Source of the DNA: Pavona decussata
Lineage: Eukaryota
Assembly (NCBI GenBank): GCA_977016875.1
Contig: CDRNST010000051.1
Span: 5,456,001 to 5,520,000, forward strand
Length of the DNA: 64,000 bases
Reading direction: 5' to 3'
Shown: one piece after another, positions 44,753-64,000 of the stretch
How positions within the stretch are numbered: the first letter of the stretch is position 1
Layout: each line of letters begins with the position of its first letter
Position numbers and translations under genes: made by a program
The notes under the pieces: model-generated
What the model was told of the DNA's origin: nothing
The model's input: the letters and a program-made list of their open reading frames with translations, nothing else
Database searches by the model: none

Positions 44753-44756
44753 TTAA

Positions 44757-47700
44757 GAGCGACTGCCTGTAAGGATCGAGAATTCGCCGTCAACGACCAA
44801 TTTGGCGAATCGCTCATATTCGGTCCAAAAATACCCTTTGGTGAACTATTTTCAAAAATCATATTCAAAAGTTCCAACGACTTTTTAATTTTGAGAGATT
44901 CGCAAAAATTTGAAAATGCGGTCAAAGTGCGGTTTTTCGGCCAACTGAAGGTTCAAAATAAGGTGCGCGGACGAAGCACTGCCAAATGCTTAAACTTACT
45001 TCAGTTGAAGTCAAACTTTACACAAACTATGAACAACTATTCTTGTTTATTGTCCACTACTAAACATTTTCAAATCTATTCATTTTGTGATTCTAGCAAG
45101 CACGTTAAAACCACCTTTGTAGAGCGCTAAAAATAGCGGCAAAATATAGGTAATATTTAACGGCACAAAAGTGTTCCTGGTACCTCAGTTTTCGATAATT
45201 TTACTTTACAGCCTTAACATATAGTTATTAAACATTCACCATGCCAAGTTTCAAGCTCGGACTCGCAACGCTTCCCTCTGAGAAAATCGGAGAACGTTTG
45301 CAATGTGTTCGGCTCAAATAACACAAGATTTAACGACAAAATGGAAGCTAATTAACTCGAATTAGGCCAAAATCCAAAAAATAGACTTCAGTCTTCTTAA
45401 TTTGTCACTTGACGTTAAAAAACTTTTGTCATCGTGTAAAATAAGCATATCCTGAGGTTTTTTTTATCCTAGAAAAGCAAATTGGAGCTGGATATCCCGC
45501 CATGTTTACCACGATTAGTTATTCACCTTGCCGACTTCCCTGTTGTCGACAAGTATTGCTTACATTTGGGCTTACATTTCAAAGGAAACAAATGCTGTGA
45601 ATTGTTACGGGCTTTAATTAAAGTCTTAGAGAAACGTCTTAATTTGTTAGGACACGAAATAAGCTTACATTTTAAGCCATACAGTGTATTTTACTTGACC
45701 TACATGAAATGCCTGTGAGCAAGCGCTTGAAGTCGTACGCGTGTAATTTGAAAAGGAAGATAAATTACAAATAAACAAACAATTTGCCGACTCCTCAAAA
45801 CGTCAGGATGTCAAGAGATTTATTCATGGATAAATATCCCAGTTCAGGAAAAAAGAAACGCCTGTTTTATAAGCTTAATATTTGTAGCAATTTCAAAACT
45901 GATAACTCCTGTCTACGAGTAGAAAGTAAAACAAATACATTTAGCATTGATTATTGAAAGAGTTAAATGAAACATACCCATTCTTTCTATTCCTTCCTCT
46001 TTAATGCTGCACCACCAAGTTTCTACAAATGCCATACATTTGCTTAATCAGCAGAGGTTATTAACTGAATCCATTTTCTCACAGCACACGCATCCAAGAC
46101 CATTGAGCATCCGTTCAAAACATCTTTCAAAACTCCGGTGACGTGTCACGCAACCCCAAGTTCAACCTAACTATACCAGAAACTGTTTCAGAATTCGCAC
46201 CCTGAGTAGCTGCAGATATCACCTATACTACGTTTTCACACTAATTCTCCCACAGTTGACAAAAACTGAACATCAGAAATTACCTAATCAATTCATCTAG
46301 AACATTCCAGAACACTTACGTCATTGTCCAAACACTCCAGATTATTTTTAGAATCTAAATGTCTGTCATTTCCCGGAGTTAGCAATCTGTAGTGTTACTA
46401 AAAACAGGTTTCCAATACATCAAGGGGTGCTAATATATTGGGTTTAATTGCTTAGCACTTTTTCAATCAGTTTTTCGAAGGAGATCAACCAAGGCAGACA
46501 AAAATTCCAGGGTGATTATTCTCCGGCATTTTCAAAGTAATGTGAGTAATGGCTCTTTGCAGCTATATTGCGCTACTCAGTCAGACTACTCTGTGCGGAC
46601 AATTTAGTGATTACCCTGGTCATTTTGAATGTGTCGCTCTCACGGATTGTACGAAAGATATCACAGGACACTTAGCGAGTCTTAAACTTAGTACCGATGA
46701 GGGCATAGGACTGAACTAAAATGAAGTTGCTGTTAGCTAGAGCTGGTGAGTACTTTTGTAATAGCACAAACATAAAGGCTTCCTGTGTTTGTTTTCCATC
46801 TCACTTGGTAGAGATAATTTTTTCTAAGTTCCCAAAAAATGTTTTAAGGTGATTTTCACAGTGGAACAAAGGTATCATACCTTAAACATTTGCCCACGCC
46901 AAAGGGCCGACTTTGGCATTCGTTGCAGCGTGTGTGTGAAGACCTGGGCCTCAGTATTGCTCCCTCACCCGTCCACAAAAAGGCCCCATACCTGGCTCTT
47001 CTAGAGGACATTACTAGCAAGTGCAAGTGCGGAAGTAATCCAATAAGAACTGCAGGCCCGTAGCAAGGTTAAAACAACTAGGAGGGGGGGGGGGGGCAAG
47101 CAAATTGGTTAAACAAAGCTACACCCCCCACACCTCCGTCAGTCAAAAAACAGACCATGTAGGGAGTTTAAGATGCAACGAGAATAACAAAAGAAGGAGT
47201 AGATTTACTAAGCAAAACAATAACTTTGCACCTGCATCACACTTTTTGCTATTTCTTTGCCGTCACTGTACGCAGACTACCACGTGAAATTGCCTAATTT
47301 CACGTTTGAGTCTTTGAAGGAGGACGTAAAAAGACGACGACAAATTTTCCTTCCTTTTTTACTGATTAAAGTGAACTTAGTAATCGGGCAGTAGGAATCC
47401 GTCCTCAGGAGATTAGCCTTGAATGAAAAATATATATACATATATAAAATAGCGAGCTGGAATTATCGCGATGAAGTTTAAAAGAACGCGAATATTCTCT
47501 TTATAGATAATGTTTTCGCTACCACCACCGTCGTCTTATCTTTAACTCCTTACTAACAAATACATATCGGTCATAAGGATTTTGGTTCTTATTTCCGATT
47601 CACAAGGAAGGAATGCGTTTGTTGCTATGTAAAAACCAAACGCTAGCAGAGGAAACTGTCAGGTAATAAACAAATTATTAAAGGTTGTGAAAAGGCACTT

Positions 47701-50091
47701 GCAGCGCAAGAATAGTCCTGTTTCGAATTCACGAGGACGGCTGGATAAAAAGACAAAAGACACATTTGTACAGGGTTAGCCTCAACCTAAAGCAAAATAT
47801 TCACAAATTTTAGAAAGAAAGTGCTGAATCCTAAAATAAAACAAGACACAGAATTGTTAAGAGTTCTTCTTCTCACTGGTATTTGTGAATATTTTACTTC
47901 AGATTGTGGATAACCCTAGCGGTCTCGGTGAATTCGAAACTGGATTAGTCAAGATTAATTGTTGCACATTATCTTTTTTTTTAATTAGTTATTTTTTGAC
48001 ATATTGTTTTTGTTGTTGTTGTTGGTTTTTTTTTTTTTACACTTTCAAAAATTCTGGGGGGTGGGGGAAAGGGGCTCAAGCCCCCCCCCCCCCCCCCCGG
48101 TCACTCCCCCTGCTATATGGAACTAGGGATGGCAGGAGCCCATTGTAATGGGCTCCTGGGGATGGGTATTATATTTTTTCAGAGTTTCGGGAGGATGGCT
48201 AATTTCTATTGGTCTCAATTTATGACAAGAAAAAAATCCTACATAGATTTAAAAGATTTCTACGTAGTTGTCAGTTTTGGAGAAAAATTCTTACACAAAA
48301 AATTATCTTCCTTCCTTCCCCACTCAGAAATATAAATTCCAGTCTCGTCAACACTAGTCGTTTCGGATATTATTTTGCTTGATTTAGTTTAGATGTTACT
48401 AAGGTTGAAGTAATTAAATAAGTATGGTTTAGATAATGTCAGTACCTAACCCGATGGTTTGGTGTTGCGTGACTTAGAAAGATCACAATCTCGATTGCGG
48501 CTAACATGACCGCGTGACTATATTTATCCTACGTTTACCGCTCAATGTCTTCAATTTCGCAGAACAATTGAGTTGCTTGCATTAGCATCAAAGGCCACAA
48601 TTATTTTGCACTATTCTCATCTATGTACTCATTTTTTTTTTCGAGAAAACATAAACGCGGAATCTCACGCTTTGTCATTTGCCGCAAACGCGATTCTAAG
48701 CTCAAGCAACTATTTTCAACCCGAAGATTTAATAGGAAAGCAGGTGATACAGACTATGAAGAAAAATGATGTGGATTCAATTGGCATCTGATGCTTATAA
48801 TAGTTGTATGGTTTCAGTGGTGTGGAATCAAAAGTGGATTCATGGTTTGGGTATGTGCTTATTTTTTGTGAGGACTTCAAACGATAAGCTTAATTTAAGC
48901 GATAAATCTGCTACCATTAATTGTTGCGGATCGGACAAGTTCACCTCTTGTTTCTTACTTATTTAATGGCATTTGTGTTCGCAATTGCTATTACAATGTA
49001 ACTCTGTCATTTTGATTATTTGAAAAAGCATTAGCAAACCTTTTTACATCTCTCAACTGAGAAGCAAGGAATTGCAAGTTTACATTAGCACTCAACGTAA
49101 GAATACCTCGAATATTAAAATGGTTCATGGTTCCAAGCGATTTCATGTCGATCTTACAGTTTTCAAAATGTTTATTCTTATACAGTATCCCACTATTCCT
49201 CTTACCTAAAGAATTCAGCAAGTTTTTTTAGAAAACCAAGCAGCTAAGGATTCATGACATCTCTTAGATTTGATCTGTCAAAAGTGCTTGCGGACAACTC
49301 TCACAGTACAAGTAAACAAAAGGCAAAAGCCGCCGAAGTAAAAGAGCACAGATTTTCATTTCAAATTTAGATTCTCGATAGGCCATAACACCTCTGTGGC
49401 CGTTGCCTTGCATGATAGTAGACATATCTTCAGGGTCAAAGCACAAATTAACAAGACTTAAGTTTTATTTTTTAGATTTTGGCCTTATTCGAGTTAATTA
49501 GCTTCGATTTTGTCGATAATCTTGTGTTGTTTGAGCCGAACACATTGCAAACGTTCTCCGATTTTCTCAGAGGGAAGCGTTGCGAGTCCGAGCTTGAAAC
49601 TTGGCATGGTGAATGTTTAATAACTATATGTTAAGGCTGTAAAGTAAAATTATCGAAAACTGAGGTACCAGGAACACTTTTGTGCCGTTAAATATTACCA
49701 AAATTTCGCCGCCATTTTTAGCGCTCTACAAAGGTGGTTTTAAAGTGCTCGCTAGAATCACAAAATGAATAGATTTGAAAATGTTTAGTAGTGGACAATA
49801 AACAAGAATAGTTGTTCATAGTTTGTGTAAAGTTTGACTTCAACTGAAGTAAGTTTAAGCATTTGGCAGTGCTTCGTCTGCGCACCTTATTTTGAACCTT
49901 CAGTTGGCCGAAAAACCGCACTTTGACCGCATTTTCAAATTTTTGCGAATCTCTCAAAATTAAAAAGTCGTTGGAACTTTTAAATATGATTTTTGAAAAT
50001 AGTTCACCAAAGGGTATTTTTGGACCGAATATGAGCGATTCGCCAAATTGGTCGTTGATGGCGAATTCTCGATCCTTACAGGCAGCCGCTC
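44757..50091. mobile_element. Non-autonomous Sola3-type element, 5335 bp, ~650-bp TIRs, TTAA target-site duplication
   Basis: TTAA(44753-56)|GAGCGACTGCCTGTAAGGATCGAGAATTCGCC ... GGCGAATTCTCGATCCTTACAGGCAGCCGCTC|TTAA(50092-95). TIRs ~44757-45406 and ~49443-50091. No transposase motifs recognised inside. Confidence 0.88.
47160..47552. mobile_element. ~390-bp MITE nested in the Sola3-type element
   Basis: Ends TAGGGAGTTTAAGAT and ATCTTTAACTCCTTA are imperfect inverted repeats. Confidence 0.6.
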
Positions 50092-50819
50092 TTAATACTT
50101 GAGATGTTGACTACGATACTACATCTAACAACTGTAATAAATTACATTAAAGCATGCAAGCAAGCATGCGAATGAATTTAACACATTATGACAGAAGTAT
50201 TTTCTCGACGTACGTTTGTCGAATTCAAAGTTCGACTTACCTTCAAATTTGGCTGCTACTGCCTCTTCAAAATTAGTCTATATCAAGTCATAAACTTCCT
50301 CAAGATAGATAGATAGATAATTTATGAAAAACTGACAAGTCTTCCTTTTTTTTTGTTCCGCTGTTAGCCATGGTCTTTTCTCAACCGAAATACGCAGAAT
50401 GATTGCAAATGGCGATCGATCTCCTTCAGTTCTTTCAAAACTGGTGCGGATCACTGCAAACTGGCCTCAAAACATACATACATACATACATATACTTTAT
50501 TTATCCTCGAATTTACAGAGTAGCTTTGAATAGCTAATATCTTCGAGAAAGAGACCATGTTTGACGATGTTTTCGAGGAGAATGGCAAGAAGAAAACGAG
50601 GCTGGGATAGAAACGAAGTAGTTCATTGTCATTGCAACAAACTTCCATGTACCCATGTTCATTCCGTGCATGTTTGGGCTATTCAGAAATAAGTAAAATC
50701 GATACTTTATTTTGTTTTCCTTTCTTAAATATCTCAAACGATCAAACTGTTCTGGATTCCAACATATCCTTTTCTACATTTTCACATTTTTAACTGTAAA
50801 CAACTGTTTGTGTCCATGA

Positions 50820-53800
50820 AAAACTCCCAAATGTCCTAAATTTACTTGAGCTCCCAGTTAAGGAAAATTTCGTCAATGATCCATCCACTTCAGGGTAGGT
50901 GTTGTCTCCAAGCATTCGCCTGGGGTACAAAAAGTTATCATCTCGACGCAGTAAATCTGGAAAAATTCCAATGTTGTTTGGTGCGTTTTTAGCAAGTACT
51001 TCAGCCGGTATAATCAGAGAAAGATGATTTCCAACGTCTGTGGCTGTCGTCAACTTCTCGTCATCACTGCAATCTGTGTGTGCATTCACTACGTCTGTCC
51101 TTCTCAATCAATTGTGGGATGTGACAATTATCTTTCTGTTTGTTTGAGCTACTTCTAACTCCCGTTGTTTTCTTCGATAACAGTGATGTTAAGTGGCTAT
51201 CGCTGCCACTGGTTGTCAGGCTGCTCTGACTTTCCTCGTTCCGAGGGGTATTAAGGTTTGTTCGAAAGTCTTGCCCTCTTTTGGAAGGTTTTTTTCTTCG
51301 GTTGTGTTTTCCGGGCAACTTTCTTCTTTTTCGCAACCGAGCCACATCTTGCTCCCTCTGAAATATCTCCCACGTTTTTGCTTACTTTTGCGCTCCTTTT
51401 GTTATCCTTTTGTTAATCCTGCCTCTCTTCCTTGCTTCGTTTAGCTTTCAAAGGCTCGTCAAGGGTTTCCTCTGGTTCTAATGTGTGCTTCCGTTTTCTT
51501 CCGAACTTTGACTTAGTTAAAAGTTTATTGATCTATTAAAGTAAGATTAAAGAAGCCACATGTCACCTTCTGGACCATACCCTTTGAATCTCACTTTATA
51601 CTCGTAGGATAAGGTGGTTTTGCAAAGACGGTGCTCAATCACGTCTTCTACCTAATAAAACCCTTCCTCCAGTACTGGTGAGTCTGCATTCTCCTCGTTT
51701 CGGTTAACACTGGACTCACTGCTTTCACCTCGTGGAGCATAACCCATCTTAGTCAACTTTTCTTTAGTCTTAGGATGTAGCTGGTACTTTGCTGGAGTGG
51801 CTTGATCAACGAGTAGCTCCACAGGGCCAAGTAAACTTGATGGCTCTTTCTATGGTGTGAGAATAACATCTTTGGAAACACTATACGTGCTATCGGCTCG
51901 TGAGTACCTATAAAGTGAGCATCGAAACCTCACTGACTCAGAGCCATCTTTGGTAGACTGAAGAATTTCAATCGACCGATGTCATAATTTTTGGAGCCAA
52001 GGTGAGAATATTTGAGGGCAACATCACAGAATTTGATTATGTCGTGGTTTGGGTCAATTGGAGCTTTGCCAGGAAGGTGCTTTGACGCCTAGTGCCGCTT
52101 TTGTCTGGATCGTGAGAAGTACTCTCTCGGTAGCAGTAATTTAATAGCTTGTTTAATATGAATTGAAGAAATTGTGCCATCGTTCAGTTGCCTAGAAATC
52201 ATCCACTTCTTTGCTTTCCCTTCTGGTAGAGGCTCATCGACTTCTTCTAACACATCACTTTCGATAGTTTCCCCAGCATCTTGTAAGGAAAGATCCGTAG
52301 TCTTTAGGCACTCATTGTCGTCGACACCTTCTGATATTTGTTCTTCAATCTCAGTTAGCTCATCCAGTGCATTGTCGGCAAATGAAACATCCAATTTATT
52401 GTAGCCATCTGGAAGGAGACAGTTTACCAATTTAATTCCACTCGGGTGTTCAAATTTGTACGGAGTATCCCAGTATCCTGACTCCTTCAATAACTGAATG
52501 CATGATGCTGGCATGTACCTTGAAAACAACATCTGTCCTTCTTTTTTTCCAGCTGAATGGGCTTGCCTTTGTAGCTGAAGGAATTCAGAAAAGCTCTCAG
52601 GATATGAATACGACACAGACAAGGACTCACTGTGTTCTTTGAAGGCAAATGCCCGTCTTCTCCTTTTTGCAGACATCTTTATTTGCACACCAGCTTGAGC
52701 CAATCGTACTTTCGCATTTAAATTAAATTGAACAGTAGAGCTTTTCTGAAGCATGTCCGCAAAAGTAGGCTGTGAATCCAGGGACTGGATCTCGTTTGTC
52801 TTTCCCTGCATTTCGCTAATGATCCTTTCCGTTGCCTTAGTTCCAGAGCGATATGGACATGCCCAGTTGGGTCCAAGTTCTTTGAAGTGAAGATACATGG
52901 CTAGTTGATGGAGGGAGGCTGCAGCAAATTGGATTTCAGGGGTTAGATAACACCCATGTGTCAAAAAATGCCCTCGCTTTGAAGGATTACTCTTGGCACC
53001 AAACTGCGAATGCAAGCGAACATTCTTGAGTTCTAGAACCTTCTTCCATAGTCGAAACACAGTGATTGCACAGGAGACAGACTTCTGGACATCTGCGGGG
53101 GAGCCGAAACCTGGATTTTGAAAAGGGTCTACCAGATTTGTTACAGCCCTTATATAAAGACTAGTGCCCTGTGAACCTGGTACATGTTCGTCTAGCAAAT
53201 CTGCAATCCTTTTGGTGAAAATGCGCTCACAGGCATCGGAATTTTGGTTGAAGAAGTAAATCAGAACAAGGTCTGTTGCAGTGATGCCTGTATCAAGCCC
53301 AGCTTCCTGGCATCTTTGACGGAGATCTTTCAAATGCTGAATGGTTGCAATGCGGGTCTTGCCACCTCTTTCTTCCCAAAAGGTCAGATCTCGTGTCTCG
53401 TACTTCAAGTTCTTTAAGAACAATCTCTGTTCGTGATCATAGTCCAGATAGGCGATCGAGGGAAGAAACCAATTATAAGGTGCACGAAATCTTTCATCTT
53501 CCGTGCCAAAGCCTAGAAAGTAAACACCACCGTCAACTTCGGCTATACTAGGGGTCATCATCTGGGCTGCTGCCGCCAATGACAATTCAGCAGAGTCTGT
53601 TGAATATCCCACTAGTTGAAGAAGAGAGTTCCTCGGCTTTCCACATTGTTCATAGAAGCAATTGTGTCACAATTTCTCCCAGTACTTTAAAAGATGAACG
53701 GCTTTGTAACCTTTGCCTGGTTCAGGCCACATACAGTATATCACTGTAGGTTCATCCCTTGAAGCTAAAGAAACCAAGTTGTGAACTGATACCGATTTGG

Positions 53801-56440
53801 AGAGTTGATCCCGTGCTATTATACCATCCACCATCCATTTGAGTGCCCCGAAATCGTCCATGTCACCGTGCGATCGATTTTTTTCTCGGGATGGGTAACA
53901 CTTCCTCGTCCCAACTGTTCACATCTGGATTCCAAGAATTTCCCAGCAGAGAGACATCACCAGATCTTGTCATGTATGGCTCTAAATATCTCAGTGATCT
54001 AGCCCCATCGCTTGCTTCGTTGAGAGGAAGGTTCTTGAACGATGATGCATGTGTTAGCGCGCTTTGATTAATTCCCGGATCCAATCACATCACTGCTGCA
54101 TGTTTAGTCGCGTTTGTCTCTCTTGCAAGACCGAAAAGTTCCGAAAGAATGGCGTAATTCGCAGGCCCTAGCTGATTTTTGAAAAGGCTACTTATGTCCT
54201 TGATGATATTTAAATAATGGTGGTTATTAGCCTTAAGCATTTTAGCGACCAGGTTCTTAATAACAAGGACTTGAATTGGCTGTGTCTTTGATACGCCCGA
54301 CTTAAAAAGCCTAACCAGGTCTATGATCAGGTTTTGGTCATCTCCATTACTGTAGTTCTCCTGAAGCTGTTTTCCCACTCCAGTGGTGAGAGCTTCACTT
54401 GTATTAATGCCGAAACCTGTTTTGCAGCATCTTTTCGCCTACTTACTTCTTTATTCAACGCGTCTGATAACTCTTCCCTTCTAGCATTTCATTTGTTAAA
54501 GCCAACATGTCCAATGCGATTTTCAAGGCTGTCGCAGCTTCCACTTTTACAATGTCTGAGAATGTCTTTTAGCTCCCGCATTTGCTTTGCACAGTTCGCG
54601 CAAGTGTATGGGTTTTCTGCATATGACAGGGCATCCTCCAAACAAGGTGGGTCGAGGCTCTTTATTCCCCCAGTGATCCGAATTTCTTTACCATGGACAG
54701 TGACGAGTCAAGCCAGAGGAACGTACGCTGACCGGGATGATGTGTGCGATTTTTTTATTATCTCACCCGCATCCACTGGGTGTTGTTTTTTCCAGGACTT
54801 GTAGTCGCAGCAGCTTCCATGACCGAGTAGGGAAGTGACGCAGTTTATGTTACCAGAAGCCAGTTCTTTTTCAAAGAGCGTCTTCGAGGTTACTCTTCTG
54901 ATACCTTCGTCACGGACAAAATGTTTAACGACCTCTGGTTCCCACAAATAACAACAACGAACTTTTTCAAGAGGTTGAGTTTCATTGCCAGATCCAGAGG
55001 TCTTACCTACTTTAAAGGCACCTTGAAGTACCTCGTGATGTCATTGAAGCTTCTCCTGGCCGTCTTTTCTTCTGATGGGGCTGCTATCTTTTTTGAGATC
55101 TGTTTGTCTTCCGTGAAAAAGTTAAGTGCATCTTGATGGCATTTGGACCTACTGTGTTCTTCCGTCGCTGCCACTCCAGAAAACTTCAAGATGCCACTGC
55201 CATCCAAAATATTTTGTATGGAGATCTTTTTGCTTTTTATCTTGTGGTGTTTCTGATGGTTTCTTAAGGCCCATTTCTGGTGTGGAAGACAGATCTCACA
55301 CTTGACCGTAGAACCACTGGCATGTGAAAACTGAGGAAAGCTTTTTCCTCTTTCAGCAAACTGCACTTGTTCCCCAGCTAGGCTTCCAACTATCACTGGA
55401 GGAAAGGCGAGTGCCAGAAACGCTCTCATCCGGGAAACTAAATATGTGGCATTTTTCCCTGCACCCCCTATTGGGCTGTTTGAAGAGGATTCGAAATCTG
55501 GAAATATCTCCTGAAGAAAGCCATTGAAAGACTTAAAACTTCCTGGAAGGTGCGAGGGAATCATCTTCTTTACTGCCTTATGATGCTTCATGAAAAATCT
55601 TTTCGCATCATCTTCTACCACCTCTATTTCCGGTTGTGGCCACTCTTCGGTTTGCTGTTGAGGTTGTTGTCCAATTCGAAATCACTGTCTGGCTGTTCAC
55701 TTTCCTCGCCAAAAATACTTGTATTGTTGTCGAAATCATTTAGGAAGTCATCGTCGTGTCTGCCAAGTGGTCTATCAGTGGTAGTTTCCCAGTCTTCAGG
55801 TGCTTCCTGATCAACATCTTTAACAGAATCACCTGTTTTGCTCTCTGGTTTTTGGATTTTTTTCGGCCGGATCTGCATTCTGTTCTCCATCGGATTCTTG
55901 CACGCCGAAGTCACTGCTTTGTATCGCACCAGCACTGTCGACGCCATTATCAGAAAAGGGTTTTCGTCGTAAGAAAGAAAAACGCTTGCTGTCCGTAATA
56001 GGAAAAGAAATCGCTTCGGGATTCGTTTGGTATGCCATATTCTTGCTTGAAGTGGTCCCAGATTTCCGCCTTCCTGACAAAGTCTCCCTCGCCTCCTTCT
56101 GAATACCTCATTAACATCCATTTCTCAACATCATCTGCTTTAAAGCACTGGCTTGAAGTCGCTGACGGTGACTGTGTGAAGAATGCTAAACCCCTGTAGC
56201 CATGTGCTTTCCTCTTTCTCTTGACAGAAGTGACCATTCCCTTGTAACCAACCAACAAAAACGCCTTTCCCAGAAGGCCAAAGAAATTTTCTCTTTCCTT
56301 TTCTCCGCTGCCGTGTGCTACCTTAAAACTTTGCCAAAACCTGTCTCGTTCAATGACATGGTCGGCATCTTTTTTAAAATTCATGATGGTGCGCGCCAAT
56401 GGCTAAAGGGAATCGAGATGTAAGATGCGTCAGGATAATC
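50820..56440 (-). mobile_element. Very large P-superfamily-like transposase pseudogene with extra DNA/chromatin-binding domains
   Basis: Colinear minus-strand ORF pieces over ~5.6 kb. Core motifs occur in P/THAP9 order: NEASDGARSLRYLEP (D1), GYSTDSA (D2), LDYDHEQRLFLKNL (DxxH), FNQNSDACERIFT, GTSLYIRAV, PYRSGTKATERIISEMQG (E). Many stops and frameshifts. Confidence 0.7.
51545..51660 (-). other. Chromodomain-coding segment in the tail of the P-like transposase
   Basis: FY*VEDVIEHRLCKTTLSYEYKVRFKGYGPEGDMWL matches chromo consensus YEVEKILDHR...EYLVKWKGY...DNTWEP. The stop TAG is one change from GAG (Glu). Confidence 0.8.
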
Positions 56441-58620: not shown

Positions 58621-59049
58621 TAAGCCTCAAAATAACAGTTTTAACACACCTTGCGAGCGACCGGAAAAGCGCGCAAAAAGTCCGAGTGGGGGGGGGGGGG
58701 GGGTTGCGTGACGACCCTAAAAACGGCTGCGAAGGAGACTAGGTAATTAGGCGTTATTATAACAAAACAGAAAAACGGAGATTCAGGATCCCTGCTTACT
58801 ACATTTTTTTACGACTCAGTAAACGCGTAAAACGTTTTTTTTTTTGTTTTTGTTTTTTTTCCGAAAGACACCCTTGTAGGACTACAGTAACCCTTCGGCA
58901 TGATTTTGAAATCTAATCATTATCCAAAAAGTTTGATTTTCCCAGTGCGCAGGTAAGTTGAGTTCGATAACCAAGGTTTGGATGACAAATACATCCGCTT
59001 GCGGTCACATGAAATTTCACATCCCGTGGTGTCGAGAGTGCTTCAATGT

Positions 59050-59572: not shown

Positions 59573-62500
59573 ACTAAGCTTTCCAATTTAGAATGTTCTT
59601 AGACAGCTGGGAAGACATATTCCGAAAATATTCAATTCATCAGTTATATTTTGGTATATTCGTACTGTGATCTGTACTTATAGCAAATGTTATCAACCCT
59701 ACAAGAGCGGGTTGGATGGCAGTCAATATTAAATCTAAAAGAAAAACGTCAATTGCCGAGAACAAAAGGCGTTTAATTTCTTGTGTGATAAGGATGTTAC
59801 GGTTAGCTAGTAATTTATTATTTTTTTTACAAAGCGAAGGTGTTTGTATCAAAATAATAATTAAGTGGAGACATGATTTTTCGTGATTTCTGATATAATA
59901 CAGTCGAACAGATTTTTTTTTCAGCCTAGTGCGGATGAGTTCAAAGTGTTCTAAGAGAAATTCGGCTGTAATGACAGACACCACATTCACTTTACTGAGA
60001 TCGGAAAACGGCACTGTTGAACTACCCTTAGCGAAATTGGTAGTGTACCAAATACAAAAGTGCGTAGCCTAAAATGTCAGGACAAGGGTTTGGTATCAAC
60101 GTTACGTATTCTGGAAAAAAGAAAGCGAAAAAAGCCAAAAAACGGCAAAAAAATGGGCCCTAGACTTCAATAAGCTTACGTTATGATAGATTGCAAACAT
60201 CTCTTCTTTGGCTGATGCAAAACAGATCCAAGGGATTCAGAAAATGACCTCAAATTGATAAATGTTTCGCAGATCCGGCATTGACATCATGAGACTGAGC
60301 TTATTCCCGCTGCAAAATTATTCTGACCGTGACATTTTAGCGGTGGAAAGCGACTTACCATGAGAATACAGACAAACTAATTGGAAAAAATACCATTTTC
60401 TCTTCATGCAGGGCTTGGAAGGAACGTCGAGTGACAGAAATTCTCAAATTTCACAGCACAAGTAGTACAATGTGGCTATGTTCTCAGACCCCGGTTCAGA
60501 CGCAATGTCACAGATATTGTTATATTCATTCGTCTTCTTGATGGTATACTCAAATACGAAGTTCTTGGAAGGACTTTGATTTTAATAAATAGTTATAACA
60601 GACCAGACTGTAGCTATGTATATATATGTATAGATGACCGGGCTCGATGGAGCCATAAAAAAATATACCTTATTTATAGTGGCAAATTTAGGCAAGGACT
60701 GCGAAGAGACATAAGAGACAGATCGGACGAGCGTTTCTTTGTTTGATTTTGTTCCAAGGCAATCCTGGCATGAAAGGCCAAAGAAGTTAAAAAGCTAGCT
60801 ATGCTGTGTTCCACAATGAACCTCTTAGGACTGTACGAATATCCTGAATTTTTATGAAAAATTAATGCGGGAATGTAAAACATGAAATTCCTTTTGTTTT
60901 AAACCAACCTTTTAGCTCTGCTGAGGCGCATAATCAAATTCTCAAACAGGTTGGTCATATTATTGAGACAAAAATTGCTCCGAAGTGCCCGGCAACTCTA
61001 TTTTGCCAAAAATCGCTCTTACGGAGGGAGATGTGGTTTGTCTGAGTTGTACCGGGGATCAAGATTCCAGATGTCATTTGCGCGCGATAGCTAATTTTAA
61101 CGCATGGTGATTTTGGCATATCCAGCTCCCCCCTCCCCCTCTAGAATGGGGAGTCAAAGAGCATAGAGATTAAAAGCGAAAGTGCTTTTCCGTCATTATT
61201 TACAACGGTATATTAACACTCAGCAATTCTAAAGTTCTTGGAAGCAGGCTGTCTCTCTTTTTGAATATTGCGCAAGCGGCGGCCTCAGGAGTTGAACATG
61301 CATCTGTCACTGTGAGAAATAACAGGAAATAACGATATCAGCAGTTGCTGGTCTTCAAGGCGCAATAATCCTGTGTTCGAATAAGCGAGTTTTTGAGCTG
61401 AAGCATTGTGCTGGCAGAATAAGGCATTTTAGAGCAGGATTCGAGCGGAATAACATAAAATCAGTAACAATATCGATATGCAAGACAGTTGAAAGAAAAC
61501 TTTAGAACTAAGTACAAAACAGTTCACTAAGTTACGGAAAAGCTTGCCGTTATACCCTACCTACGTCCCTTTTTCACGCTGTTTATTGAAGAGATATATG
61601 AACACTGATTACTTCAAGACTACCCATTTTCAAGTTTGTTTCAATGTTTCTCGTTTGCTAACCGACGTCGCTGCGTATTGAGTGGATTTTCCCAAATATT
61701 AACAACAGTTTGAGCTGTAAACAACTGCCCTAGAAGTTGTCAAGTCAATCAAAGATTCAGAACCAAAAAATCTAATGTAGGTAACAATTTCAGACACAAG
61801 CGATTCAATGTTAATTGTGCAACCAGAAAACTTGTCCTGCATTACTTAACATAACAGACAAGCGCTCAATCTAAAGCAGAGGAAGCCATGGGGCGCAGCT
61901 AGGAAAACCTAATGACCATTCAGTACACTTTTTTTAAGAAGAATATCGAGGCTGAAATTGGCGAATTTTTAAAAATATTTTTAGACTTATTCTGAGGCTG
62001 GGATTGAAATTTCATTAAGAATTATAAATTTTCCTCGTCATAAATGTGCATATAAACATTATGAAACGTCCACTATATATACCAGAACACAATACCAGAA
62101 TGTAACGCGACTTGGCATACCCAAATGAAATATCGTACACGGGGGCATATTATATCAACCGGAAATTTAAGAATGTTTTAAGAATATTTTCAACCTTAAG
62201 GAGGCAAAAAAAAAAAAAAAAACTACCCAGCCTGGGTCTGAAGAAACGTTATTCTTATAAAAAATGAGGTAAGTCAATTATTTTAAGTCTGGTGTTTGTG
62301 TCTCAGCTTTACCCGAAAAACCGAACATTTCCTCGCAAGATCCTGGCACATGGGTATGTAACTGTTTACGAACAACGCAGGACTATGATATGCAGCAGAC
62401 TATGAACAAACTAAACGGAGCGAATTTTACTGATTTTCAATCATTCCGTATATGTATCCCGATGATTCGATAATGCGAGTGAGGAAGGCCCGATAGGTGA

Positions 62501-63084
62501 GTGAATAACAACAACAACAAAAAATATGTTTTGTGCTTTAACGCTGTCAACAGACTGACTTTCGTTCAAGGTGCTAGAATGCACAGAAACGCCCTGGGGA
62601 GGGTAGTACTAATTAATTATTAACTAGTTAATAATTAACAACATAATGTTTACATTTTCAAAATGCTCGTTTCCAAAAACGAGCAAGCTGTAATATAATG
62701 CTGGATCAAATAGAACATTGACCAGACTGACAGGCTGACAGTCCAGTACCATGTGGCCTAAGGGGCAGTGGTAAAAAGGAGAGCAAAAGGAGGAGGGGTT
62801 ACCTCAGAATGCGGTTACACTCGCAGGATTTTTTCGCTTTATTTTTCCAGCGAGGATTGTTGAGGGGGACCATCCACATTTTCCAGGAAGACGAATTTTA
62901 TTCCCAGCAACACGAAAATGACATTTTTCCCAGCTAGTTTTGCCAGTGAGAATCAGCCAGCCACTAAATATGTAAAATGAAGCAAAGACCCAGCAAGCTA
63001 AATGGCTTTAGTGACATGATGCCAGCCAGGGATGAAAGGGGTGGAGAGCGGTTATTTCTGAAGAGCGGTTCATTGGGTACCCCT

Positions 63085-63270
63085 GCTCATTGGCTTCCCA
63101 GTACTTTAAATGTTCTGAAATCGATCGTAGGAGTCTCTTTATGTCGAGAGTGGTCGAAATATTGTTCAAACGCTTGTCTACCACACTAATCACAGAATAC
63201 AAGCTAAATTTGCTCTTTGAATGACTATTACTGAACCACAATTTAATCAGCAGCTTTTGTACCCCATAAT
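63085..63270 (-). mobile_element. CACTA/EnSpm transposase internal fragment
   Basis: GVQKLLIKLWFSNSHSKSKFSL...VDKRLNNI...IKRLLRSISEHLKYWEANE matches the LGV.K....LWF...D.RL...R.PRSI....WKA.E motif. Confidence 0.75.
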
Positions 63271-64000
63271 GACTCTTGCATGAGTTGCCACTCGACAGTT
63301 TTGAAATGCGTTGAGAAGCTATTGGTAAGCACCATCATCATCTCCCACGTTAACAATTAAGCTTTCCTCGCAGATATGATCCGGTCCTTTTCTTCCACAA
63401 AATCCCCACACTTTGTCTGTGTCTGACTTGTACTCTGGTCGGGGGATAATTGCAGTCTCATCCTCTGCCTTGATGTACAGAACTGGTATGGTGCTCAGAG
63501 ACATCATATCCTTTGCATTTTTGTACAGCTTAGCAATAGTTTTAATGTTTTGCTTATATCCACCCAACACATACGTTATTGCATTGTCATTTCTCCAAAC
63601 CATTGGAGAATGTACGTTCAGACCATCTAGGTTTTGAGAAACAAAATCACACAAACGTAGCCCTCCCATCTTCAACAAGACCTCGTAAAAGTCTTTTGAA
63701 GTAGCGCTGGATCTTTTTCCTTTCTACTTTTTGCAAAGGTTTTGGGAAATTGTATCCAAAATGTTCACTAGCCCTGCCTTTTCTTTTAGTTTTCCTTCTT
63801 TGTGCGCTTTGGCGATGTTAACCAATGCAGTGATGTCGCCTCCTGGAAAATTCTTTACTCAAAAATTCGCTACTCAACAAAAAGACTTGAGACCTGCAGC
63901 ATTCAAGTTGCTCTTTAGTTTCTCTGAGTTTGAGTAACAACTGATCCCTTGGCAAATAAGTAAAATTTGTTTTGCTTATGTCAGTTTCATTAGAATCACT
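63271..64000 (-). mobile_element. Second P-superfamily-like transposase fragment (continues beyond the window)
   Basis: KDFYEVLLKMGGLRLCDFVSQNLDG...KAEDETAIIPRPEYKSDTDKVWGFCG matches the P/THAP9 first-Asp motif DExAI....(Y/W)D......G(F/Y). Confidence 0.65.

Follow-up and report, generated by a model that had tools for sequence, protein, structure and literature searches.

The broken coding pieces on the minus strand of a coral contig raise the question of what kind of gene they once formed, and whether that gene belonged to a mobile element. The stretch analysed here, called the window below, comprises 64,000 nucleotides of Pavona decussata (contig CDRNST010000051.1, positions 5,456,001 to 5,520,000), and the pieces in question lie at window positions 50850-56399. 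The initial annotation, made from the letters alone, had read them as a giant transposase of the P-element type which had exchanged its THAP finger for other DNA-binding modules and gained a histone-mark reader. Very probably they are the remains of one member of a family of very large cnidarian cut-and-paste DNA transposons that combine a transposase of the P fold, a putative frameshift and chromatin modules; the window copy itself is dead. Beyond what that annotation contained, the two halves of the gene stand in different reading frames and are joined by an apparent programmed -1 frameshift.

Relatives of the window copy were sought in the animal's own 602-Mb assembly by a six-frame search that used as query the window copy's longest open reading frame (ORF), which has 507 amino acids (aa), lies at 52089-53612 and carries the DYDH motif. 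The search gave 31 matches at no fewer than 12 related loci. The open frame of the second half of the gene, ORF2, extends over 1684 codons on contig C352 and 1281 codons on contig C289. The copy on C352 consists of a 631-aa ORF1 followed by a 1556-aa ORF2, the open frame of which reaches 128 codons upstream of its first Met, and the copy on C289 is nearly identical and also has a 631-aa ORF1. These two loci are 99% identical over 17-20 kb with sharp edges, and the intact full protein amounts to about 2,200-2,300 aa.

The edges of these long copies are element termini with a 12-bp terminal inverted repeat (TIR), CAGGAGTGCTCA. Each 300-bp end was found again at 99-100% identity in several other places, 6 to 7 of the occurrences being 100% identical, always from base 1, and four complete pairs of ends enclose 6.5, 9.5, 13.9 and 20.3 kb. 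All four pairs are flanked by perfect 6-bp target-site duplications (TSDs), TCACGA, AAGAAT, AATAAT and ACTATC, which are unrelated in sequence. The shorter pairs are read as internal-deletion derivatives, because they are absent among the scored protein matches of the search with the 507-aa ORF. The recurring termini and the perfect TSDs are the mark of a recently active cut-and-paste transposon and not of a host gene or a segmental duplication, and one subfamily looks still mobile in this genome. The initial annotation was thus right to expect a transposon rather than a single-copy host gene, since TIRs, TSDs and multiple copies are all present, while the duplication of 7-8 bp that it expected did not materialize.

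The long copies carry further sequences besides the transposase gene. A 105-bp tandem-repeat array lies upstream of ORF1 (L017:18-1017), and an array of a repeat of about 545 bp starts just inside the 3' end of ORF2 and runs toward the left terminus (C352, about 61971-63608); the lengths of the tandem arrays differ between the C352 and C289 copies. Upstream of the transposase, the C352 element also contains an ORF of 178 aa (L017:3157-3693, minus strand) in which Pfam recognizes a HIRAN domain (E 1.2e-5). This ORF is present in C289 as well and may be either a second gene or sequence captured from the host. Another, older pair of ends, at 90-93% identity and 28.7 kb apart, was found at C101:259923-288666 without a matching TSD; it surrounds a decayed transposase in which the heptamer described below is mutated to TTTCAAC.

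Judged by its sequence, the junction between ORF1 and ORF2 is a strong candidate for a conserved programmed -1 frameshift signal. In C352 ORF1 ends in ...CCT TTA AAC TGA and ORF2 occupies the -1 frame over the same nucleotides (TTT AAA CTG ...), with no room for a GT..AG intron between them. This arrangement, with TAG as the stop, is shared by the window copy and by a third subfamily on C90. The alternative, to which we give a small but real share of probability, is that the frame change is not programmed, either because ORF1 and ORF2 give separate proteins through an internal Met or splicing, or because the copies are simply defective. Several observations favor it: in one clade ORF1 and ORF2 are fused in a single frame, for example in an uninterrupted ORF of 2218 aa, many gene callers let the ORF2 protein begin at a Met close to the Cys module that follows the junction, and UUUAAAG, which the window copy has, is less suited as a shift site in eukaryotes. 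The two views were weighed on 28 distinct junctions, with 47 further loci coming from a protein-guided scan of metagenome contigs.

Sixteen of the 28 junctions, from as many diverged lineages, are of the frameshift type and twelve of the in-frame type. They are located at window positions 54929-55016 (minus strand), at about 6950-7060 of L015 and, for the other 26, in L047-L100. The heptamer U UUA AAC stands in register in 25 of them; the window copy reads U UUA AAG and two in-frame copies are mutated. Among the frameshift-type junctions a stop (TGA, TAG or TAA) follows the heptamer directly in 15 of 16 and comes as the second codon in the sixteenth (TAC TAA), and in 15 of 16 the -1 frame can be read without a stop from the heptamer on into the Cys module, the exception being the dead copy on C90. 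The spacing from heptamer to Cys module, taken between the same two end-points, is 90, 99, 105 or 108 nucleotides (nt) in the 15 frameshift rows, always a multiple of 3, as opposed to 103 nt in all twelve in-frame junctions. Ahead of the heptamer stands a codon for P, T, H, S, A or Y, always with U in its third position; the amino acid varies and the final U is constant, which therefore indicates selection on the heptamer and not on the amino acid. All of this speaks against an unprogrammed change of frame, as do the 128 conserved stop-free codons upstream of the first ORF2 Met in the recently mobile C352 copy. The lack of room for an intron in that copy points the same way, together with a contig that is colinear across the junction. 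Read contigs cover the element in pieces and show no joint there, and they prove neither transcription nor a splice.

Minimum free energy (MFE) folds place a stem of about 13 bp, in which GACCUCNGGAUC pairs with the codons for W-D-P-E-V-V, 7 nt downstream of the heptamer. Over the 28 sequences 86.8% of its cells are paired, compared with at most 57% in slid controls, and its covariation score is 0.174 versus 0.080 in shuffles, none of 500 shuffles scoring as high. One pair occurs as U:A (10 sequences), C:G (9) and A:U (5), and another as G:C (21) or A:U (7) with no unpaired cell at all. RNAalifold predicts the same stem independently, and the 5' arm is kept at the nucleotide level even though the two layouts read it in different frames. 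A covarying stem that begins this close to the heptamer again counts against the view of an accidental frame change.

To place the two layouts relative to each other, we used a tree of the first 290 residues downstream of the junction, from which eleven rows with early stops were left out and which was rooted by midpoint only. The in-frame junctions form one clade with support 98/97, and the frameshift layout, with its reading frames intact, is distributed over four or more deep clades.

The catalytic part of ORF2 (residues 200-900) served as the core query for the question of ancestry. A full HMMER search with it gave 456 cluster representatives at E up to 0.001, and a word-index search gave 36 long relatives, many of them with a precomputed Chromo hit; one of the 36, from the coral Oculina patagonica, is a hypothetical protein with 77% identity. 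The AlphaFold2 (AF2) model of the core has a predicted local distance difference test score (pLDDT) of 82 and a predicted template modelling score of 0.83. Its best Foldseek matches are two strand-transfer complexes of the Drosophila P element transposase (6p5a_A, E 6.7e-8, probability 1.00). Superposed on 6p5a by VIA, the core reaches Z 22.4 at a root mean square deviation of 3.1 A over 341 residues, corresponding to P residues 200-566, which we take to run from the N-terminal RNase H part through the GTP-binding insertion domain into the beginning of the C-terminal RNase H part; the insertion domain of the core superposes on that of the P transposase. The next folds are far behind, namely HzTransib at Z 9.7, RAG1 at about 8 and Hermes at 6.8. 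Structural neighbours of the core in the ESM Atlas are THAP9/TNP-like clusters (TM 0.70 over 565 residues), and a language-model search arrived at the same THAP9/TNP-like families. That the core would model as a P-type transposase with an RNase H fold had been anticipated in the initial annotation, and in this respect it was correct.

Canonical P/THAP9-like copies also occur in the same genome, with 27 PF21787 matches, none of them at the loci of the THAP-less family; examples are L036 (C78:2680935-2684348) and L041 (C86:786520-789933), with open frames of up to 693 aa. When a core alignment of 29 sequences of our family was compared by hhalign with a profile of six such copies, the match had 82% probability and E 1.1e-5 over 327 columns, with G-Y-S-T-D-S opposite T-S-D-G and L-D-Y-D-H opposite S-D-A-P-H. 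Invariant or nearly so in the core are D28 in 24/24 sequences, D165 in 29/29, D216 in 28/29, H219 in 29/29, R222 in 29/29 and E421 in 28/29, all of them kept in the window copy. By this conservation D28, D165 and E421 are read as the putative catalytic D, D and E, and D216-x-x-H219 as the D-x-x-H motif.

The resemblance to P could be attributed instead to another DDE superfamily in which a D-x-x-H motif goes together with an insertion domain (Dada, Kolobok, hAT, Transib or MuDR), the match to P reflecting merely which structures have been solved; we consider this improbable. Dada elements have no TIRs, insert into genes for small nuclear RNA or transfer RNA and make TSDs of 6-7 bp (Kojima and Jurka 2013, PMC3706591). 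Thus the 6-bp TSD fits Dada, which also occurs in Nematostella (PMC3706591), no Pfam P model matches the family, and Kolobok and Dada are without a solved structure and cannot be ranked by fold. The termini, however, are unlike those of Dada, since a TIR and four TSDs that, like their flanks, are unrelated in sequence stand here against the lack of TIRs and the insertion into small-RNA genes there. The protein of Dada differs too: it has CCCC and CCHC fingers, its motifs (MDSTKK, YVD..CC, LDIWHF, GSTSLES; Dataset S1) are not those of the THAP-less family, and none of five motif strings of our family occurs in the Dada alignment of Dataset S1, either by eye or by string search. Kolobok makes TTAA duplications, and none of the 6-bp TSDs is TTAA. 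Hermes, RAG1 and Transib stay at Z 6.8-9.7 against 22.4 for P, hhalign places the P motifs in register, and the Atlas neighbours are TNP-like.

A number of results nevertheless weigh against a P-type family that is expressed by frameshifting and of which the window copy is a member. Pfam models for P element and THAP9 transposases (TNP-like_RNaseH_N/GBD/RNaseH_C, Tnp_P_element) match 0 of the 29 core sequences, even at E 1. The core profile finds no P transposase among PDB sequences; by phmmer and this profile the PDB yielded no transposase, and the matches were SENP chains, chromodomain chains and noise from acidic low-complexity sequence. For the stretch on the N-terminal side of the core, including the helix-turn-helix (HTH) part, hhalign shows no similarity to canonical P, the TSD has 6 bp and not 7-8, and a search for THAP domains in ORF1, ORF2 and four long homologues found none. 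The fold ranking covers solved structures only, a group in which Kolobok and Dada have no representative. The window copy's own termini were not found, either by an inverted-repeat scan or with the TIR of the intact subfamily, and the reads, which are contig-level and unspliced at the junction, cannot show translation. We therefore file the family as a P-type-fold transposase, a deep relative of the P superfamily and not a demonstrated member. The label of a divergent P lineage, as given initially, is partly supported: the RNase H fold of P type and the borderline profile match speak for it, membership in the Pfam P families does not, and the lack of THAP on which the label also rested extends to every long homologue tested. 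In the literature searched, with Repbase and Dfam lying outside that search, we found no P-like transposase described that also carries a chromodomain and Ulp1.

That these are domesticated host genes, a transposase-derived family of chromatin proteins instead of mobile elements, is barely credible: long proteins with chromatin-reader and SUMO-protease domains are typical of host regulators and some databases annotate relatives as ordinary proteins, but multiple copies end in identical termini, their TSDs are perfect and lie at unrelated sites, and derivatives with internal deletions share both ends. Many copies, the window's included, are decayed, and the catalytic residues are conserved in the family.

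Long gene models from other genomes have one continuous conserved architecture. It begins with one or two repeats of about 75 residues, followed by a variable acidic linker and a C-x2-C ... E-H-x5-H module, and continues with a Cys/His module (C..W...C...H..C..W..H), I-K-S-L-D-P-P-C ... C-x-N-C, long helices and a helical module. The intact ORF1 has a single N-terminal repeat and the homologue P0017 has two. In the AF2 model of P0017 residues 1-830, which is of moderate quality (pLDDT 60), the N-terminal repeats reach pLDDT 73-85 and form beta-beta-helix-helix-beta-beta units. Foldseek with this 830-residue model returned weak rows (E above 0.07), almost all of them from tandem winged helices or from the DNA-binding domains of RFX proteins, for instance RFX5 (8zjr_M, probability 0.97) and RFX-DBD (1dp7_P, TMt 0.59). 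To call the repeats winged-helix-like, as this model suggests, is reasonable but not proven.

Pfam gives no match for the intact ORF1, and for the intact ORF2 it gives Chromo (E 1.5e-5) and Peptidase_C48/Ulp1 (E 7.8e-7). In the PDB sequence search ORF2 residues 1354-1554 match SENP1, SENP2 and Ulp1, and residues 1003-1077 match chromodomains of CDY, HP1 and MPP8. Chromo is also present in many closer homologues and in homologues with just 28-31% core identity (P0093, P0117), so the chromodomain is not part of a chance chimera, a doubt that the initial annotation had raised about its own reading. Peptidase_C48 was found in P0006 and weakly in P0033, and a 1992-aa relative from Clytia hemisphaerica, a hydrozoan, bears the name 'ubiquitin-like protease family profile domain-containing protein'. 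This distribution argues that chromodomain and protease are ancestral parts of the protein and not accidents.

With the intact protein as a guide, the window copy can be read as a single colinear, decayed gene in pieces, as shown by the ORF list and by tblastn against intact relatives. Minus-strand ORFs form a colinear series between 50790 and 56399, and all features given below are on that strand unless said otherwise. The N-terminal region (55989-56399), with an ORF start at 56399, holds two winged-helix-like repeats at about 56187-56297 and 55989-56129; residues 9-84 of the intact ORF1, i.e. its single repeat, match twice within 55989-56297 (E 0.003 and 0.001). An acidic low-complexity linker follows at 55660-55988, recognized in translation, with its frame broken relative to its neighbours; it is variable and predicted to be disordered in homologues. 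The conserved C-terminal module of ORF1 lies at 55013-55660 (ORF1 residues 413-630, E 3.5e-35); it is kept as far as hydrozoan homologues and contains the C-x2-C ... H-x5-H finger at 55136-55300.

The junction of the window copy consists of the slippery-type heptamer T TTA AAG in the ORF1 register (55010-55016), which is T TTA AAC in most relatives, and the ORF1 stop TAG directly after it (55007-55009). The predicted RNA stem extends over 54929-55003 in MFE folds, with the 5' arm at 54991-55003 and the 3' arm at 54929-54941, the latter in codons for W-E-P-E-V-V. The conserved Cys/His module, in the -1 frame relative to ORF1, occupies 54684-55025 (43% identity over 114 aa in tblastn) and has invariant C, H and W columns; in intact copies it lies upstream of the first Met of ORF2. 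ORF2 residues 1-1062 match at 51520-54683. Their first part, 54085-54683, which has one stop and one frameshift near 54357, includes a CxxC motif (54582-54611), long helices that are predicted and taken for a coiled coil (residues 656-810 in the homologue model) and a helical HTH-like module (54094-54228).

The P-fold core, with its insertion domain and a C-terminal conserved block, is assigned to 52065-54084 by conservation and fold matches. The candidate catalytic residues are D at 53998-54018, D at 53586-53606, the D-x-x-H motif DYDH at 53424-53447 and E at 52809-52832, and an acidic linker lies C-terminal to them at 52176-52346. Next come a chromodomain with in-frame stops (51538-51651), recognized in translation and matching Pfam Chromo in the intact relative, and a Lys/Arg-rich tail, also seen in translation (51064-51420). 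The tail region as a whole, 50850-51420, ends with the first part of what in intact copies lies before the Ulp1 protease (ORF2 residues 1204-1242 at 50850-50969). The homology to the window copy ends at 50850, and therefore about 310 last residues of the intact protein, the protease domain included, are missing; an Ulp1 match was sought in the window and none was found.

Within its ORF2 part the window copy differs from the intact ORF2 by 7 in-frame stops and at least 3 frame changes, and its nearest DNA relative in the own genome is only 75% identical, which is why it is read as old and solitary. It is a dead, 3'-truncated relic. Against Pfam, P/THAP9 models included, ten ORF pieces of the window gave nothing meaningful. 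The inverted-repeat scan around the copy revealed no credible TIR, and the TIR of the intact subfamily is not near it, its 4 matches with 2 mismatches being at chance level.

The initial annotation thus described this locus well in some points and less well in others. Colinear minus-strand pieces in the domain order it gave were borne out, and so was its judgement that the copy is dead. The extent of the gene was only roughly right, in that the start at 50820 lies within a 166-bp repeat beyond the end of homology and about 1,850 codons fall short of the intact protein. The domain list lacked the conserved Cys/His module (54684-54947) and the Ulp1 protease of intact copies.

The repeat just mentioned, at 50685-50850, adjoins the truncated 3' end and lies outside the element, to which it is unrelated; it is dispersed in many copies at 82-92% identity, no strand is assigned to it, and it looks like a miniature inverted-repeat transposable element or a short interspersed element. 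At window positions 50000-50096 another abundant repeat has its edge. Dozens of its copies are 92-99% identical, and one of them is at C51:5500753-5500848, i.e. window positions 44753-44848. A poly-C tract (48076-48100) and a poly-G tract (58682-58711) bracket the window copy 10.6 kb apart. They are probably merely homopolymer runs, a reading based on the flanks, which show no TIR or TSD.

These parts suggest how the element could work. The protein would excise and integrate DNA by a P-like DDE mechanism. A -1 frameshift at U UUA AAC, stimulated by the downstream stem, would produce the full-length transposase, and normal termination would leave an ORF1-only DNA-binding protein that could act as a regulator. 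In the in-frame clade the same shift would truncate the protein after about 8-19 codons. The chromodomain may tether the enzyme to methylated histone tails and the protease may remove SUMO from chromatin or silencing factors; integration would then be targeted to chromatin through the chromodomain. A wider model, which we put forward tentatively and hold somewhat less probable than its opposite, is that of a deep, uncatalogued cnidarian sister lineage of the P superfamily with 6-bp TSDs, in which the frameshift would set the ratio of ORF1-only protein to transposase, and chromodomain and deSUMOylase would read and perhaps counteract SUMO-dependent heterochromatic silencing.

The interest of these findings rests with the family and not with the relic in the window. 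To our knowledge, no member of the P superfamily other than the P element transposase has a solved structure, and the superfamily is defined by the THAP finger and by duplications of 7-8 bp. The same catalytic fold combined with other DNA-binding modules and another spacing of the staggered cut would show which parts of the P machine are exchangeable. The subfamily that looks mobile, with its identical ends, perfect TSDs and deletion derivatives, is a candidate large-cargo transposon from a reef coral, an organism with few genetic tools. Programmed frameshifting is known from retroelements, bacterial insertion sequences and one domesticated transposase of yeast, and the heptamer and stem would extend it to a metazoan DNA transposon. 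If true, this would be among very few eukaryotic transposase genes with programmed frameshifting, and among the first in an apparently still mobile DNA transposon of metazoans. The fusion of a chromodomain and a SUMO protease to a transposase points to a link between transposition and SUMO-dependent chromatin silencing.

Compared with Drosophila P and human THAP9, the family shares the RNase H catalytic fold with a large insertion domain, the layout of D, D, D-x-x-H and E, helical and predicted coiled-coil segments upstream of the core, and cut-and-paste transposition with TIRs. Truncated N-terminal P proteins repress transposition, to which the ORF1-only product would be analogous. It differs in that the THAP finger is replaced by winged-helix-like repeats and other zinc modules, the TIR has 12 bp instead of 31, the TSD has 6 bp instead of 7-8, and the protein is about three times longer and carries the C-terminal chromodomain and Ulp1 protease. 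Its sequence is also too distant for any Pfam P/THAP9 model, and its short and long proteins would arise by the proposed frameshifting where P uses alternative splicing.

Dada resembles the family in its TSD length, in a long transposase of about 1,400 aa which is intron-bearing or multi-part, in D-x-x-H and in its presence in cnidarians (PMC3706591). The THAP-less family is set apart from Dada by its TIR, its unrelated target sequences and its P-like motifs and fold. Kolobok has a TTAA target duplication and a THAP domain, neither of which was found in the THAP-less family. Ginger1 and the plant KI-MULE/CACTA elements carry Ulp1 domains and are thus, like our family, DNA transposons that encode an Ulp1-type cysteine protease domain, but their cores are integrase-like, Mutator or CACTA and unrelated to the P fold. 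Chromoviruses and other elements with a chromodomain in their integrase, which are long terminal repeat retrotransposons with retroviral-type integrases, share a chromodomain C-terminal to the DDE enzyme, suggesting in both cases tethering to methylated histone tails; here its carrier is a cut-and-paste transposase of the P fold.

For the frameshift the closest parallels are the bacterial elements IS1 and IS3, in which OrfA and OrfB are joined by -1 frameshifting according to the same logic. As in these elements, an upstream DNA-binding ORF would be joined to a catalytic ORF by a -1 shift, with a short and a long product, both predicted in our case. Among eukaryotes, yeast Kat1, a domesticated hAT transposase cited in PMC4316626, shows that programmed frameshifting can control a transposase-derived gene. 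In contrast to IS1/IS3 and Kat1, the putative signal of our family has a heptamer of eukaryotic and viral type, U UUA AAC, from which a long stem is 7 nt away on the downstream side. Its host is a metazoan, the element is apparently still mobile, and a sister clade keeps this signal with its ORFs in one frame, where a shift would shorten the protein instead of completing it.

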